The position numbers and the translations under genes were made by a program. 64,000 bases of DNA from Eutreptiella sp. 'Long Island Sound 2002' (lineage: Eukaryota > Protista > Euglenida): NCBI GenBank assembly GCA_964036045.1, contig OZ038379.1, positions 5,828,001 to 5,892,000 of the forward strand. The letters are read 5' to 3'. Shown piece after piece: positions 9,440 through 56,675 of the stretch. The notes under the pieces were generated by a model, which did no database searches, had not been told where the DNA came from, and was given only the letters and a program-made list of their open reading frames with translations. Each line of letters starts with the position of its first letter. The first letter of the stretch is position 1.

Positions 9440-9635
9440 GCAGCACAACCCTAGTACCCCAACCACTGGGCTCCCAACTACTGGGCTCTCCCAACTCGAA
9501 AACGACACCACAGGAACACAGGCCGCAGCGGCCAACAGAAAGCAGCGACCCGACGCAACATGCGAAGGGAAGAATGGGTGACTGTCTAGGGCCCCGTAAA
9601 GGAGCAACAACCCGACAGAATGTCACACAGGGGGG
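9440..9635. repeat. Interspersed repeat family A, copy 1
   Basis: CAGAAAGCAGCGACCCGACGCAACATGCGAAGGGAAGAA..GGTGACTGTC.AGGGCCCCGT..GAATGTCACACAGGGG is shared with the copies at ~34050 and ~55700. Confidence 0.85.
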
Positions 9636-20050: not shown

Positions 20051-20498
20051 TCAGTGTGCAGTTACCTAGCAAAAGGTTGTGCATGTTAGATACTCCCCCA
20101 TAGGGGGCGCCCTTGCGCGCGCAGTGCAACTGTTAGGGCCTAGCCGCACTAGAAACCAATACTTTGTGATACTAGGGGCATCATCGTTGCTTGATAACAG
20201 GCTTTTTGATGCTCCCTCCGCATTGGGGATATGGCATATTTGGAAGTTCACCCAATTTCACCTATTTTCACCTACCGGGGTGGGGGAAGGGGCAATTTGT
20301 AATAGGCAAAATTTGGAATGGCGAAATTTCCATGGAATTTAAGAATTTGTGCCAAATTTGTTAGCATGTTGCATTATTCTGCGTGATCCTCATGGAGCGC
20401 ATTGTGTAGCAAGTGCTCTATGTTCTATGCTCTATGGCATGCTGATGTTGTCCCACGGCAGAGAATGTGCAGGACAACCATCTCTCCCATCATGTTAC

Positions 20499-30089: not shown

Positions 30090-31020
30090 GGGGGAACGTT
30101 AGCGCGCCAGGCGCGCGCCGGGCATCTTTTTTGACCCGTGCCCCACCGGTAGCCTTTTAGGGGGTGCACTAAGGGGGCGCACTTAGAGAAGGCTTTTCCT
30201 GCGGCGCGTCCTGCGGCGCGCAGTTTCGGAAACCTGCCCAATTTGTGGAGCTTTTTAGATTCCACCTTGTTGTGCTCCCCGGGGGGGGCATGGGGCCCGG
30301 TTTTACCATATAGTATGGGGGCGCCTCAAGCGTAGTGCGCGCGCAGTGCAACTATTTGGGCGTCTGGCCGTACTAGAGACCCATACTTTGAGATACTAGG
30401 GGCCCCTAGGGGCATCATGGTGACCTGTAGCGGAGGTTTTGAGTTCTGATTTTGTCCCCCTTTGTTGGGGACCCCCGAGAATGCAGGGGTGATGTAGCAT
30501 TTCCGCCCTCTTTTGGGCCCCAACCTTCTGGTGCTATTGAGGAAACCGGGACAATCTTTGATTCCACGCTTTGTTGGGCACGCATTGAGCACTTGTTTGC
30601 ACGCATGTGGCACTGGGGCATCGTAAGGAACATATGGAGGGGATCCGGACGGCCAAAGATTCCATTGGGAAGTGGAAGTCTTGAAGCAAGTCTGATTATC
30701 CGATACAAGGACGCAATTAAGGCTCGTGTGAGTACCATGTACGTAAGGGAAAGGGCATTCATGGATCAGGTTCCATGCAAGTTTGCCCCAACCCAACCTC
30801 CCTCGCTAAAAATGGTGCAACCCACGCCTTTTCATGGCTTTTCCAGTTGTGCATGATGTGTGTTATGTGAAGGGAAGGTAGTTTGCAACTTTCTTGAGCT
30901 GGGGCAGTTTGGGTCACCTAATTCTAAGGGCGTTTCCAAGGGGTGTGCTTGGGGGCTCTTCGGGGGGAACATAGTCTAAAAGTAGCGCGCAGTGTGCGCG
31001 CACTGTGCAAAGACTCCCCC
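30090..31020 (+). mobile_element. PIF/Harbinger-like derivative with nested repeats
   Basis: Left end GGGGGAACGTTAGCGCGCC. 30880-30990 is near-identical to 19924-20032. Encodes WARIEHLFARMWHWGIVRNIWRG, a continuation of the transposase remnant. Confidence 0.6.
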
Positions 31021-32252: not shown

Positions 32253-34044
32253 CAGCAGACAGTCGCAGGCCCGGGCGCTGGGGGATTGCAAGATGTCCAG
32301 TTTGCTGCAAGCATACCAAGCACATAACCTCAGATCATGTCAACAAGGCAGTATGGCATGATCATCAATGTCCCGAGGCTTGGGGTGCTTGACATTGTGC
32401 AACGAGAAAATAATGGTTTCCTGGGATACTGTCTTGAGTCATCACGACTCGTGAAACATGCAACAACAACGAAAGCAATATCCTATTGTTCACACACATG
32501 GTGAAGCCCCAAGGAAGAGGTGTACCCCATGATCGTTGTTGCTGTGTTGATGATCGCCATAGCATTTGAAACAACGTGCTACCGTCATATGCATCCTCAC
32601 CATTGATGACGAGGAGGCACATAACTGACAGCAATTGATGTTTCCAATCAACATGATGCTCCGGGCTGCAACCAGTTTCACCATGTACAACTAAAACACA
32701 ATGTCTGTGAAGAGCTTTGGCCGTGTGCCCAAGATGCACATCCATGAAGTGCGTTGGCACAGCACTGCTGCAATAAAATGAAAGCGACATGTACAGGCCA
32801 TAGCACTACCTTCTGCACCAGCATCCAACCCGTTGCCTAACCGAGTCCTAGTTGTGCAGACATTGTATGTTGGTTATTTTTGATATTTCACTTTGCTGTT
32901 TCCGAGTGAGAGTCAGGGTTGCAACGGCACACTGGTTTACGGTAGATAGTTTGTCGGTGGTCGCATCCAGATCGGTTCCCAGCCCCCCCCCCCCCCCGCC
33001 TGTGACACTGATGTTGCAACAGGGTTGTGTCGTGTTGCAACATGTTTGAGGCGTGTATTTGTTTTCAGTGTGTTGTTTGTGCGTGCATGCTTGTGGTGGA
33101 GGAAAAACTGCCTCGATTTCTGCCTGTTTGCCCCGGCTCGAATCATTGTGCCCGAGTCAGTGAGCCCCCCCCCCCCCAAAAAAAAGCAGCGGGCGATGGG
33201 TTAAATATGCTTAAAAAAACCAACCGAAACACCACGTTATTTGAGGATTTTGAACTGACATTTGAAGTTTTTTTTGAAAGCCACCACTCAGTCAAAACAG
33301 CTGCTGGGTCCCAAGGCCCCCCCTTCGCCCCCAAAAAGAACAAAGAAGAAGACTGGCGTGGCCGGTCTTCTTCATCAGGGTGCCTACCGCCACATCCCGC
33401 GTGGGAATTGTATCACATGGGGTCGGTATGAAGAGCTTTTGCACATCGCTGATTGGGGCAGTGGGTGGCGTGGGGGGGCTGAGGAGGGGATGGGGAAAGG
33501 CGGCCCCAGACCACCGCCGCCATGGCCCTGACCAACGATCTTTCAGTTGCATTTCTGTGCCTAAAGCAGTCTGCTCTGTGCTGAGTCTCGGCATATTGTC
33601 TTTGCTTTGCTTTCGCAACTGAACACGACTCCTGCTCTTTGGCCTGACTGGACGATGTTTTGTTTTTCACACGGTCAGCCACGGCCACCTTCTCTTCAGC
33701 ACCTTCTGCGCAGTGGAGTTTAGGGCAGACTCTCTTTCAGTGACAAGAAAAAACTGCAGGACCTCCCACCGACTCGACTCTGTCCTCTACACTTCCCTGC
33801 CCAGGCCTGCGCTTGAATGGAATGATTAATAATGTTATTAATGTGAAATAGGAGGGTCACCCCCCGGTACCCCTCCCCCATGGACCTGATACAACACTTT
33901 GTCAGGGGAAAAATCCGAGGAGCGAAAATGGGGCCATCTTTGGTGCACGGAACCTCCACCCCCCCCCCCCCCGCCGCCTAAGGTCTGAGTACAATGTCCA
34001 CAGCTGTGTGGTCGAGGCCAGGCCACTGCCCATTGGGGGAGGGA

Positions 34045-34190
34045 ACGCGGAAACGACACCAGCAGGAGCACCAGCCGCGGCGGCCGACAGAAAGCAGCGA
34101 ACCGACGCAGCACACAAAGGGAAGAACGGGTGACTGTCCAGGGCCCCGTGAAGAAACAACAATGCGACGGAATGTCACACAGGGGGGGGG
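34045..34190. repeat. Interspersed repeat family A, copy 2
   Basis: Same core as the 9440 and 55680 copies. Confidence 0.85.
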
Positions 34191-53267: not shown

Positions 53268-53696
53268 ACTCAGTTTGACAGTACTACGCAATAGCACTGA
53301 AGAATTTATAGATTGCAGCGGCTGTAGCTTCTGCACACTGCTCCTGCGACCACCATATTTTCACCAAGGAGTCTTGCTCTGATAAACTGCTGCACGCACC
53401 AGCACCGGATGCAGCGGCCCCACACACACTATGTGTGGTAAGCATGCAGACAGGAGGACATATTGCACTGGTGCCATGCGACATGACAAAAGCCAACACG
53501 CAGGTTACCACAAAGGGGGGCAGAAGGTAAAGGAAAACAGGTACACCAAGGTGCATCATAACCTTACCAAAGGCAAGAACAGTAGTTCCGCGTGGAGTGT
53601 ACCTAGCCCAAAATGAGAGCTAGGCACTGTTGTAGCTGCGAATCATGAACCTCCCAGTTCAAGCAGTCATTGTAATGAGATCATGACATCCTGCGA

Positions 53697-53830
53697 GGAC
53701 AGGGAGACTGTGTGCTGAGAGCACAGGGAGACTGCGCGCTGAGAGCACAGGGACATTGTGTGCTGGGAGCACAGGGAGATTGTGTGCGGCGAGCACAGGG
53801 TGACTGTGCACTGAGAGGACAGGGATACAG
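53697..53830. repeat. ~24-bp minisatellite immediately upstream of gene 5
   Basis: GAGCACAGGGAGACTGTGTGCTGA-like unit x ~6. Confidence 0.85.
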
Positions 53831-53891: not shown

Positions 53892-54971
53892 ATGGACTAT
53901 ACCGCGCTCTGCTCTGCCCGCTGGGATGCGCTCTGCAGTCGCCTCAGCGTGGGAGCGGAGACCGCTGCGACGTGGTGGTCGACGCTCCACGACGCATACG
54001 AAGGGCCAGGCCGGTACTACCACACACTCCGGCACGTCGCGGAGCTGCTGCTGCACCTGGACGCGCACCGTGCGTCCGTGAGCGACGTGGATGCGGTGGA
54101 GCTTGCGACCTTCTTCCACGACGTGGTGTACAACGCCCAGTCCGGCGGCGGCGGCCGCAACGAGCTGGACTCCGCAGAGGTGTGGAGGGACTTTGCGCGG
54201 GCGGCGCAGCTGGCGGCGCTGGAGGAGAAGGTCGCCCGCTGGATCGTGCAGACGAAGGACCACCGCTGCACCGACGCCGACGAGCTGGACTGCAAGCTCT
54301 TCATGGACTTCGACATGGCCATCCTCGCAACTCCGCCTGCGGAGTATGCAGCGTACGCCGCCAACGTGCGCCGGGAGTACGGGCATCTCTCGACCGCGGC
54401 GTGGTGCTATGGCCGCGGCGCCTTCCTCCGCTCCTTCGCGCAGAGCGACGCGCCGATCTTCGCGACCCCTGCCTTCCGCGATGCGGGCGAAGCCGCCGCG
54501 CGGCGCAATGCGGCAACAGAGGCCGTGATGCTGCGGCGGCGGCGGCGGCGGCGGTTGCTTGCGATGGTCGCGCTAACCGGCGCATGCGGCGCGCTGTCCC
54601 TCCTCGCGCTCTTCGCGCCGTCGGGGATGCTGCGGGGCGGCGCGCGGCTGTGCGGCGCCGCGGCGGGCGCGCTGGGCCTCGCGTGGGCGGGCACGCAGTA
54701 TGAGCCGTACCCGTACGCCAAGGCGCCGGGCGCGGCGGCCGGGGGCGTGGCGCTGTTCGCCGGGTCCATGAACCCGCCGCACCACGGCCACCTCGGCATC
54801 ATCGCCCACCTCGCTGCCGCCCATGCGTCCGTTGTCGTAGTTATCGGCCACAACCCCTCAAAGCGGTATGCCGTCACGCCGCAGCAGCGCAAGGAGCTGA
54901 CGGAGAAGGCGTGCCAAGCGGCGGGGCTGCGCAACGTCACATGCGAAGTCACAGACGACTACGTGTGGCGG
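53892..54971 (+). CDS. Gene 5 exon 1/2: HD-superfamily phosphohydrolase (COG4339-like) - 2 TM - CoaD/PPAT-like nucleotidyltransferase fusion; join(53892..54971,56376..56675), 459 aa
   Basis: HD motifs: RYYHTLRH, FFHDVVY, NELDSA, TKDH, DFDMAIL, VRREY, GRGAFL. Then R7, two hydrophobic segments, FAGSMNPPHHGH (HxGH), NPSK and QQRKEL. Donor CGG|GTACGT. Confidence 0.88.
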
Positions 54972-55679
54972 GTACGTTGGGCCGTGCACCCCTTCCATTG
55001 CAGCGGGTCTATGGGGGCGCCCTCAGCGCAGTGCGCGAGCAGTGTACACGGAGTGCAACTGCTTGCATGGCCGTTTGGCCGGACTAGAAACCCATACTTC
55101 GTGAGACTTAGGGTATCATTGTTGTTTGACAACAGCTTTTTGATGCTTCTTCTGCATCGGGAAGATGGCACATTTGGGTTTTCATCCAATTTCACCCATT
55201 TTCATCCGTTTTTTTCAACATTTTGTGCTCATTTCCCGGCGTGTTTTCATTTCTCGGTTCATTTTTGCTTGCGAAGGGAAAGGCAGAGCCTGACAGCGAG
55301 GAGCCTTGGTCCCTCTGCAATGTTGGACTGACCTTAAACGCCCAGGCACTACCACTGCCGCTTCCACTACCACGGCTTCGGTCCCAGACAACGACGGTAC
55401 CACAGGGTCGGAGGCGGAGCATGTCGGGTACAGCAAACAACCGTGGCTCCCCAGCACATCAACACCCATCCAAATGGCTCGCACTCCAAAGCACCACGCC
55501 GTGATGGGCAGAAGCAAGTTTGATGGGTTGCATTCCGCATCACAAAAGTGGTGGTCTCAAAATTGACGCTGAGGGTCCGATAGTGAGCCCCCCACCCCCA
55601 TTGTGGTTACTCTGGCCTCCTGATCTGATATGGAGCGTGCCCTATCCTTGTGCGGGGGGAGGGGGCACCTGGGCCTCAC

Positions 55680-56014
55680 GCACACAGAAACACAGCGAGG
55701 CAGACTATGGACGGCCTGTGGACAGAGGCGCGTGGACAGCAACAACAGTCAAACGACCCCGGCAACAACCAGCACATCCTCAATACGCCAACTATTGGGC
55801 GCCGCTGACGCGCAAACGGCACACCATGCCACATTCAGCACAGCCCCAGCACACCAACCACTGGGCTCCGCGAACGCGGAAATGACACCAGCAAGAGCAC
55901 CGGCCTCAGCGGCCGACAGAAAGCAGCGACCCGACGCAACATGCGAAGGGAAGAACGGGTGACTGTCCAGGGCCCCGTAAAGGAACAACAACCAGACGGA
56001 ATGTCACACAGGGG
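55680..56014. repeat. Interspersed repeat family A, copy 3 (longest; gene 5 intron)
   Basis: Same core as the other copies, plus a 5' extension. Confidence 0.85.
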
Positions 56015-56109
56015 AGTAAGATGAGGCTGCACACAGTTGTTGATCCGGCCCAGCAGCAGGCGTATGGACAGGGCAATTGGTTTGGCACATGCCAATGAAC
56101 GCAAAATAA

Positions 56110-56256
56110 ACACTAATGAACACCAAACACCCGATGAACACCACTAACCACTGCCAAACACTCGATAAACACCAATAAACACCAAACATCCGATAAACAC
56201 AAGTAAACACAAGTAAACACAAGTAAACACAAATAAACACAAGTAAACACAAGTAA
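56110..56256. repeat. AAACACAAGT 10-bp minisatellite in the gene 5 intron
   Basis: Iterated AAACAC(A/C)A(G/A)T units. Confidence 0.85.
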
Positions 56257-56375
56257 AGTGCTGCAGATTGTGATACTTCAGGTCGTGGGGAATCGATAGC
56301 CTGGGCAACACCCCGGCTGTGCCCCGTCCCGCCCCCTCTGCTGTCCCGACGTCCCTGTGGATGATTGCCTCGCAG

Positions 56376-56675
56376 GTCGCTCGGAAAAGGGGGGCCAAGG
56401 TGCTGCACCGGGGGATCCGGTCGTGGGCCCAGGACGGCGTGGCGGAGCGATGGCTGGAGCTGCAGAACGTCGTCGGGCCCATGGCGCTGGCGCTGGCCCC
56501 GCCGCTGCGCACGCACTATTGGCAGGCGGACCCGCGGTACGCGCACGTCTCGTCGTCGCTGGTGCGCCAGCGCTGCTCCGCTGCGGAGGCGATCGACGAC
56601 CTGGTGCCGGCCGCCATCGCGGCGGAGGTGCGGCAGGCGTACGGTGCGCAGGCGGCCCGGGAGAAGGCGGATTAG
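56376..56675 (+). CDS. Gene 5 exon 2/2: C-terminal half of the CoaD-like domain
   Basis: CGCAG|GTC acceptor, phase 0. ARKRGAKVLHRGIR and HVSSSLVR..DLVP match the CoaD RGLR and ISSSLVK..FLP motifs. Stop TAG. Confidence 0.87.
   Translation, partial: VARKRGAKVLHRGIRSWAQDGVAERWLELQNVVGPMALALAPPLRTHYWQADPRYAHVSSSLVRQRCSAAEAIDDLVPAAIAAEVRQAYGAQAAREKAD

Follow-up and report, generated by a model that had tools for sequence, protein, structure and literature searches.

What kind of protein is encoded at positions 53892–56675 of this 64,000-nt stretch of the Eutreptiella genome (the whole stretch is hereafter called the window), and is it a peculiarity of one alga? The gene found here joins an HD-superfamily phosphohydrolase domain, a hydrophobic anchor and a nucleotidyltransferase resembling bacterial CoaD, the phosphopantetheine adenylyltransferase (PPAT) of coenzyme A (CoA) synthesis. 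This HD family and PPAT have been joined several times independently, and the gene, one of these unions, belongs to a kind of system already known, the coupling of a transferase with an HD hydrolase. Its product is probably a membrane-tethered bifunctional enzyme of late CoA synthesis, composed of PPAT and a coupled HD hydrolase which acts on a PPAT-linked metabolite.

Gene structure and the splice junction

The gene consists of two exons on the forward strand, 53892–54971 and 56376–56675, which are joined in frame to encode 459 amino acids (aa). These are exactly the coordinates and the frame proposed in an earlier note on this DNA, and the HD and transferase motifs as well as the run of seven arginines (R7) quoted there are all present at their places. 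The features are listed below, with all coordinates given as positions in the whole stretch, forward strand. AF2 stands for AlphaFold 2, and ORF for open reading frame.

53892..54971, + strand: exon 1, aa 1–360, a single open frame from the HD domain through the anchor to the N-terminal half of the transferase; 100% match to ORF P0001
53892..54518, + strand: HD-superfamily phosphohydrolase domain of COG4339/IPR009218 type, aa 1–209, assigned by homologue names, AF2 model and fold match
54012..54035, + strand: RYYHTLRH motif, aa 41–48; R41, Y43, H44 and H48 are invariant in 74 family members
54114..54131, + strand: FHDVVY motif with the HD dyad, aa 75–80; H76 and D77 are invariant
54306..54326, + strand: DFDMAIL motif, aa 139–145; D141 is invariant and D139 nearly so
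54534..54554, + strand: R7 run, a perfect (CGG)7 repeat just ahead of hydrophobic segment 1; specific to this lineage, homologues read LRxQL
54546..54617, + strand: hydrophobic segment 1, predicted transmembrane helix, about aa 219–242; Kyte-Doolittle 2.1–2.2; helix in the AF2 model of P0002
54639..54692, + strand: hydrophobic segment 2, candidate second helix of a hairpin, about aa 250–267; Ala/Gly-rich, Kyte-Doolittle 1.15 over 17 aa
54738..54971, + strand: N-terminal half of the CoaD-like nucleotidyltransferase, aa 283–360; HxGH at 54780–54791, NPSK at 54852–54863
54972..56375, + strand: intron, GT..AG, 1404 nt, begins with GTACGT and ends with CGCAG; largely dispersed repeat fragments
56376..56675, + strand: exon 2, aa 361–459 (99 codons) plus stop, C-terminal half of the transferase; RGIR at 56409–56420, SSS at 56550–56558

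The start codon ATG at 53892 opens 360 codons extending to 54971, and the stop codon TAG is at 56673–56675. No frameshift or stop is seen inside either exon. Each reading frame of the intron contains 12–16 stops. GC content is 71% in exon 1 and 74% in exon 2, versus 55% in the intron, and the exon GC content at third codon positions, 0.89, indicates coding character. The automatic ORF call P0001, 539 aa long, runs on into the intron. Rfam gave no match on the locus. The locus is a genuine nuclear gene; its structure, the identities of its domains, its intact motifs and the conservation of its architecture are established in this analysis.

Exon 1 alone encodes everything from the HD domain to the first 78 residues of the transferase, with the R7 run and the two hydrophobic segments in between. 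Because both enzymes begin in this one continuous frame, the fusion of HD and transferase is independent of splicing. Splicing matters for the integrity of the transferase only, since just the second half of this domain sits in exon 2.

The spliced protein was compared with six homologues from uninterrupted ORFs, and no gap is seen at the junction (DDYVWR/VARKRG versus DDYVWRLARAVG). The TIGR01510 profile is likewise continuous across the junction, with exon 1 covering its positions 1–69 and exon 2 positions 74–153. The closest homologue, P0004, shows 61% identity to exon 1 and 68% over the transferase domain. The sequencing runs which contain the locus behave like DNA, with even depth over exon and intron and no joint at 54971/56376. 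Metatranscriptome matches correspond to the intron repeats, not to exon 1. The closest relatives (L085 and the contigs of P0206) are single uninterrupted ORFs on gene-dense contigs with a GC content of 62–66%. As these relatives are intron-free, the intron is either specific to this lineage or has been lost in the relatives. A green-algal origin of the euglenid gene would be no more than a guess.

Repeats are found in the intron and directly upstream of the gene. At 55596–56080 the contig word depth, which is the sum over thousands of variant contigs, is 10^5 to 2x10^6 in the organism's own DNA-like runs, versus about 4–55 elsewhere, and a run of a second organism shows the same rise. This segment is a very abundant dispersed repeat. 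Copies of it are seen in the window at 9441–9633 and 34043–34185, with 88–90% identity. Two other intron fragments, 55010–55204 and 55426–55519, match the window at 20120–20270, 30314–30401 and 2630–2726 with 71–79% identity. Near the 3' end of the intron, a 10-bp microsatellite-like array at 56098–56257 contains about 15 copies of TAAACACAAG and its variants. Transposon debris seems to make up most of the intron. Directly upstream of the ATG, a 24-bp tandem repeat at 53691–53825 (5.6 copies, 81% matches) is in frame with the gene, and for this reason the mechanical ORF begins at 53712.

The two enzymatic domains and the anchor between them

The transferase domain is recognized by Pfam CTP_transf_like (PF01467) above threshold, at 25.8–28.9 bits. 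The best model is TIGR01510, yet under its equivalog cut-off, with 44 bits for exon 1 and 35.3 bits (E 1.1e-8) for exon 2. Complete transferase domains of family members reach 74.4–102.1 bits on TIGR01510 versus at most 45 bits on NadD/NMNAT models, and their best NCBIfam model is always CoaD. For comparison, the canonical CoaD domain of a prokaryotic CoaD-HD fusion reaches 158.6 bits on TIGR01510. In the PDB, 33 of the 36 matches found by sequence are PPATs, and the other 3 are weak NadD tails. A Foldseek search of the PDB with the model of the homologue P0002 (predicted local distance difference test, pLDDT, 80–95 in the transferase domain) gives only bacterial PPATs among the first 50 matches, with TM-scores of 0.79–0.89 by target.

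The motifs of this domain are GSMNPPHHGH (aa 291–300, with PPHHGH at 295–300), NPSK (321–324), RGIR (372–375) and SSS (419–421). In the fusion family, the His, Gly and His of HxGH, the Asn and Lys of NPSK, the whole RGIR and two Ser of SS[ST] are invariant. In alignments with solved PPATs, NPSK, RGIR and SSS fall on the corresponding motifs. The Lys of xPSK, RGxR and SS[ST] presumably bind the phosphates of ATP and 4'-phosphopantetheine, as in E. coli PPAT.

In the transferase tree, the metagenomic P0004 is the partner (100/97) of the window's protein, and both fall within a clade of eleven fusion proteins. A long branch, supported at 100/99, separates this clade from the canonical CoaD domains. 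In a Cymbomonas protein and one other, a dephospho-CoA kinase domain and hydrophobic segments stand ahead of a domain from the same clade. As this kinase fusion follows the logic of COASY, it can be argued that the clade is truly PPAT. Judged by profiles, motifs and fold matches, the transferase is a divergent bacterial-type CoaD/PPAT, neither NadD nor COASY-type, as the earlier note had proposed. Its activity is most likely that of PPAT, the formation of dephospho-CoA from ATP and 4'-phosphopantetheine. Two other assignments were tried and rejected: NadD, based on the lower scores of the NadD/NMNAT models, and COASY, as there is no CoaE domain and the PPAT domain is of bacterial type. The transferase does not group with NadD. 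A protein adduct, which the earlier note had listed among the possible products, is unlikely: the known HxGH enzymes act on small phosphorylated metabolites, and in green algae a dephospho-CoA kinase is joined to this transferase clade as well.

The HD domain shows the H...HD...D metal-ligand pattern of the HD superfamily. In the 74-member alignment, R41, Y43, H44, H48, H76, D77, E91, S94, H124, D141, Y152, E162, R175 and N206 are invariant. The HD ligands (H44, H48, H76, D77, H124 and D141) are among them and are present here, which indicates that the metal site is intact. Homologues named by JGI "predicted metal-dependent HD superfamily phosphohydrolase" match at E-values down to 1e-16 and below. 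Membership in COG4339/IPR009218 is based on full-length homology to proteins so named and on the presence of all invariant residues. As reported previously (PMC11898892), IPR009218 and PTHR21174 are tied to this HD family, and the PANTHER label reads "phosphopantetheine adenylyltransferase". The score with Pfam HD (PF01966), 13.8 bits (E 0.074), is below the gathering score of 22 bits. Such a sub-threshold score is typical of the subfamily, as only 13% of the members in related Atlas clusters carry the Pfam HD match. NCBIfam has no match for the HD part.

The AF2 model of the HD domain, built with the 74-member alignment, has a pLDDT of 97.1. In the VIA fold comparison over all 209 residues, class I phosphodiesterases (PDEs) give Z 15–16, a value that helical folds commonly reach. 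They are followed by the HD protein 2pq7 (12.9), YpgQ (9.8), YedJ (9.3) and the YqeK structure 8wmy (7.6). No AcpH entry is seen among the fold matches listed. The fold is of HD/PDEase type, and phosphodiester or diphosphate chemistry is plausible from the model. Assignment of the domain to YqeK (COG1713) was rejected, based on the absence of an NCBIfam match and the low Z to 8wmy; the likeness to YqeK lies only in the logic of the domain layout. Assignment to AcpH (Pfam ACP_PD) was also rejected, as there is no Pfam match at E up to 1.

The linker between the two enzymes contains at least two hydrophobic segments with a short loop between them in 17 of the 17 family representatives examined. 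In nearly all of the 17, an aromatic-Pro-aromatic (YPY-like) motif is present just ahead of the transferase; here it follows segment 2. The linker sequences themselves are not conserved across these representatives. The AlphaFold full-length model, which is that of the 59%-identical homologue P0002 and not of the 459-aa protein, has two helices in the linker region. The helical hairpin suggested in the earlier note is thus predicted by this model, and its position is conserved. Such a hairpin would put both domains on one side of a membrane, probably the cytosolic one. In this protein, as in its homologues, the first helix of the HD domain stands right at the start, which leaves no room for an N-terminal targeting peptide. 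Because homologues have LRxQL at the place of R7, this run is considered a recent trinucleotide expansion in coding sequence.

Split forms of the two halves also exist in other organisms. Some are HD domains with a C-terminal hydrophobic tail, and others are CoaD-like domains with a hydrophobic N-terminus. The gene looks as if an HD protein with a tail anchor had been joined, tail to head, to a CoaD-like protein with an N-terminal anchor.

Recurrent fusion of HD and PPAT and the possible role of the HD domain

An exhaustive profile search found the full layout, HD, two transmembrane segments and CoaD-like domain, in about 12 clusters at 50% identity. Members with a named source come from Diacronema lutheri (haptophyte), Chrysophaeum taylorii (pelagophyte), Polykrikos kofoidii (dinoflagellate) and Tara Oceans contigs. 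They are labelled by pipelines only, as hypothetical, "cytidyltransferase-like" or "pantetheine-phosphate adenylyltransferase". AlphaFold DB (AFDB) contains a model of a 497-aa fusion. In the literature, no paper was found on an HD-PPAT fusion or on the function of COG4339. The fusion family is conserved, visible in databases and unstudied, and this gene is no one-off. The earlier note's observation is borne out and its interpretation holds in broad terms: the fusion is real and conserved. Its view that the architecture is undescribed in eukaryotes has to be changed, as haptophyte, pelagophyte, dinoflagellate and many metagenomic database entries already carry it, under automatic names only.

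Three types of fusion can be distinguished. Type (a) is a canonical CoaD followed by HD, about 360–385 aa long, and is represented by 23 proteins among those fetched. Further orders of this type are CoaE-CoaD-HD, CoaD-HD-CoaE and HD-CoaD without an anchor. A Woesearchaeota archaeon has a CoaD-HD protein, and Minisyncoccota are the commonest source of one Atlas cluster of type (a). Type (b) is a PPAT of eukaryotic/archaeal type (GGTFDHLHxGH) followed by HD, as in P0230 (556 aa), P0234 and P0023. The N-terminus of P0023 matches the archaeal PPAT 3do8. An AFDB "bifunctional coenzyme A synthase" with HD at 390–608 and a ciliate cluster of 232 members also belong to type (b). Type (c) is the layout of this gene. 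The transferase tree separates types (a) and (c) with 100/99 support.

Because the PPAT lineages and the domain orders differ, HD and PPAT must have been fused at least three times independently. As the same HD family was fused to PPAT in at least three separate ways, the HD domain most likely works on the pathway of PPAT.

The same HD family is fused to other partners as well: a HAD phosphatase (P0235), DUF4031 (P0029, actinobacteria) and DUF1653 (an Atlas cluster). These three partners are without a known link to CoA. A giant protein, P0123 (3466 aa), contains the HD domain at 1955–2160 and also a CoaD-type domain.

The following mechanism can be proposed. The C-terminal CoaD-like domain would make dephospho-CoA from ATP and 4'-phosphopantetheine, and the HD domain would hydrolyse a diphosphate or a phosphodiester that is linked to what PPAT does. 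In the preferred option, the HD domain would clear wrong or surplus adenylylated products, as proofreading or damage control, in the way YqeK does for NadD. The hydrophobic hairpin would keep both domains on one, probably cytosolic, membrane face. The comparison with NadD-YqeK, already drawn in the earlier note, is apt. The HD domain of NadD-YqeK cleaves cytidine and uridine analogues misproduced by NadD, and also diadenosine tetraphosphate (Ap4A) and 8-oxo-GTP (PMC9426524). By analogy, the possible roles of the HD domain may be ranked as a proofreading or clean-up diphosphatase first, a phosphodiesterase supplying 4'-phosphopantetheine second, and a regulated antagonist of PPAT third. Present evidence does not tell these roles apart, and all three predict activity on CoA-related phosphoesters.

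A more general extension can be put forward only tentatively. The HD proteins of COG4339/IPR009218 might be the missing hydrolytic partner of PPAT in all domains of life, either a proofreading diphosphatase which removes wrongly made dephospho-CoA analogues or a phosphodiesterase recycling 4'-phosphopantetheine. The algal gene would then be the version in which both activities stand side by side on one membrane face.

Several points weigh against the proposed bifunctional enzyme. The first concerns the neighbourhood of stand-alone HD genes, for which 80 bacterial loci were taken from a genome scan with a narrow HD alignment. Neither coaD nor coaE is found within 8 kb in any of the 80 loci, save one locus which is itself a fusion. 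As no coaD or coaE lies near the stand-alone HD genes, the link between HD and PPAT comes from fusions, not from operons. Second, neither the exon pieces nor the homologues reach the TIGR01510 equivalog cut-off of 103.3 bits, and the first motif is NPxHxGH versus DPxTxGH in CoaD, so a changed substrate is possible. Third, no close solved relative of the HD domain is found in the PDB by sequence, where the matches, YedJ (the best, E 0.011) and BH2835, are both weak. As no close relative has been solved or characterised, the substrate of the HD domain is a guess. Fourth, of the two hydrophobic segments claimed in the earlier note, the first is strong and the position of the second is kept throughout the representatives, but the second itself is weak here. 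If the chain crossed the membrane only once, HD and transferase would lie on opposite sides. The full-length P0002 model is moderately confident, with a pLDDT of 70.7. Finally, the support for the 54971/56376 junction is comparative only, from homologues and the CoaD profile.

What else could the protein do? It is rather unlikely, yet worth weighing, that the HD domain is a salvage phosphodiesterase. It would free 4'-phosphopantetheine from holo-acyl carrier protein as AcpH does, from CoA thioesters or from degraded CoA, and hand it to the fused PPAT. The fold of the HD domain is nearest to phosphodiesterases, with a YH-x3-H motif, and AcpH of E. coli is a non-canonical enzyme of the HD family. 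Feeding the fused domain would be metabolically sensible, as 4'-phosphopantetheine is the substrate of PPAT. The neighbours of the stand-alone HD genes are lineage-specific and include aconitase, a formyltransferase with an ACT domain (read as PurU-like), LOG-like proteins and a family III CoA-transferase. In Chitinophaga, the gene downstream of HD is a LOG-like "lysine decarboxylase" family protein. The CoA-transferase (PF02515, E 5e-119), the only CoA-related neighbour among the 80 loci, is located directly downstream on the same strand in nine Oxalobacteraceae loci (L024 8624–9868 and eight others), and this can be counted for salvage. However, it is limited to this one bacterial family, and acpP, acpS and coa genes are not recurrent beside the stand-alone HD genes in the 80 loci. 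The HD domain also lacks a match to the Pfam ACP phosphodiesterase family.

A role of the HD domain as eraser of what PPAT writes, the idea put forward in the earlier note, appears improbable. Here the HD domain would hydrolyse the product of PPAT, dephospho-CoA or CoA, and reciprocal switching would set the CoA pool. HD and PPAT are found joined repeatedly and in any order, which counts for such a pair. However, the cycle would be futile and ATP-wasting unless regulated, no regulatory domain is present, and the known enzymes of CoA diphosphate cleavage are Nudix hydrolases. YqeK also cleaves nicotinic acid adenine dinucleotide (NaAD), the correct product of NadD, in vitro, which favours an eraser, but its authors read the activity as proofreading, not opposition (PMC9426524). 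A strict writer-eraser cycle may be considered as an option beside proofreading and recycling, not as an established result.

There is a similarly small chance that the transferase is not a PPAT, and that the membrane-anchored algal clade adenylylates another phosphorylated compound, which is then processed by the HD domain. The sub-cut-off score, the altered first motif and the long, fully supported branch between this clade and canonical CoaD fit such a change, and eukaryotes normally use a COASY-type PPAT. Against it, prasinophyte-type proteins join the transferase of this clade to dephospho-CoA kinase, and the residues aligned with the phosphate-binding motifs of CoaD (NPSK, RGIR, SSS) are all retained. 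The best structural matches are PPAT only, and two further PPAT types, both canonical, have the same HD domain as fusion partner. Lastly, a gene-model artefact or a decaying gene, in which a retained intron would yield the 539-aa P0001 with half a transferase and no function, would agree with the comparative nature of the junction support and with the automatic ORF reading into the intron, but it is highly improbable given the canonical GT..AG sites, exons free of frameshifts and stops, the identity of P0004 to both parts and an intact, in-frame, 74%-GC exon 2 which supplies the missing CoaD half with all its motifs.

The proposed coupling of PPAT with an HD hydrolase bears on a pathway which is regarded as fully mapped, the five steps of CoA synthesis. 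An HD family without an assigned function has been joined to the enzyme of the fourth step at least three times, sometimes with the kinase of the fifth step too. The PPAT partners are the bacterial type, the eukaryotic/archaeal type and an algal one that is divergent and membrane-anchored. Of the pointers to a shared pathway that sequences alone can give, few are as strong as repeated independent fusion to one activity. The one studied parallel, NadD-YqeK, proved to be a proofreading system, and the finding gives a concrete hypothesis, cheap to test, for an HD family that is spread among many bacteria, archaea, algae and ciliates. The anchored layout suggests that some algae may organise late CoA synthesis on a membrane. 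If the tentative extension to all COG4339/IPR009218 proteins is true, a large orphan family would gain a role, and the textbook pathway of CoA synthesis would have to be extended by a step of quality control or recycling.

Comparison with known systems

Bacterial CoaD (COG0669, TIGR01510; PDB 1od6, 1b6t, 3nd5) shares with the transferase the fold, HxGH, the equivalents of NPSK/RGxR/SSS and a length of about 160 residues. Identity is only 22–32%, and the NPxHxGH motif and the sub-cut-off score set the algal domain apart. Unlike bacterial CoaD, it is membrane-anchored and fused to HD, and a spliceosomal intron interrupts its coding sequence in a eukaryotic nuclear gene.

Stand-alone COG4339/IPR009218 proteins show 30–63% identity to the HD domain, all invariant residues, and TM-scores of 0.88–0.94 between the domain and their Atlas models. 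They are soluble, about 210 aa long and mostly bacterial, without the C-terminal anchor and PPAT of this gene. Often they are mislabelled "NMDA receptor 2C subunit" (PANTHER PTHR21174).

COASY, which combines PPAT and dephospho-CoA kinase, belongs to the same part of the pathway and likewise places consecutive or related activities in one chain. Human COASY is membrane-associated via its hydrophobic N-terminus. Some COASY-type proteins (the AFDB entry, P0230 and P0234) carry the same HD domain at the C-terminus. The PPAT of COASY is of eukaryotic/archaeal type (GGTFDxLHxGH), whereas that of this gene is of bacterial type, with no kinase domain.

The catalytic domains of class I PDEs (PDE1/4/7/9) are aligned with the HD domain over 205–208 residues at Z 15–16 and show a comparable pattern of H-x3-H, HD and D. 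Unlike the HD domain, they are about 100 residues longer; identity is 12–16% and the Foldseek E-value is about 0.01. In this comparison, which is a fold match only, there is no evidence for a cyclic-nucleotide substrate.

In GlnD, too, one chain carries a transferase and an HD domain, and the two have opposing activities. This parallel, drawn in the earlier note, turned out to be weak: the transferase of GlnD is of polymerase-beta type and has a protein target, and its HD domain is a poor fold match (TM-score about 0.4).

NadD-YqeK, known as a fusion in mycoplasma and as nadD-yqeK operons in Firmicutes (PMC9426524), differs from the PPAT-HD proteins in the substrate of the transferase, nicotinic acid mononucleotide versus 4'-phosphopantetheine, in the family of the HD domain (Z 7.6) and in having no anchor. 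The activity of the HD domain is shown experimentally for NadD-YqeK, and PPAT-HD is known from sequence alone. The two systems share the covalent joining of an HxGH adenylyltransferase to an HD hydrolase.

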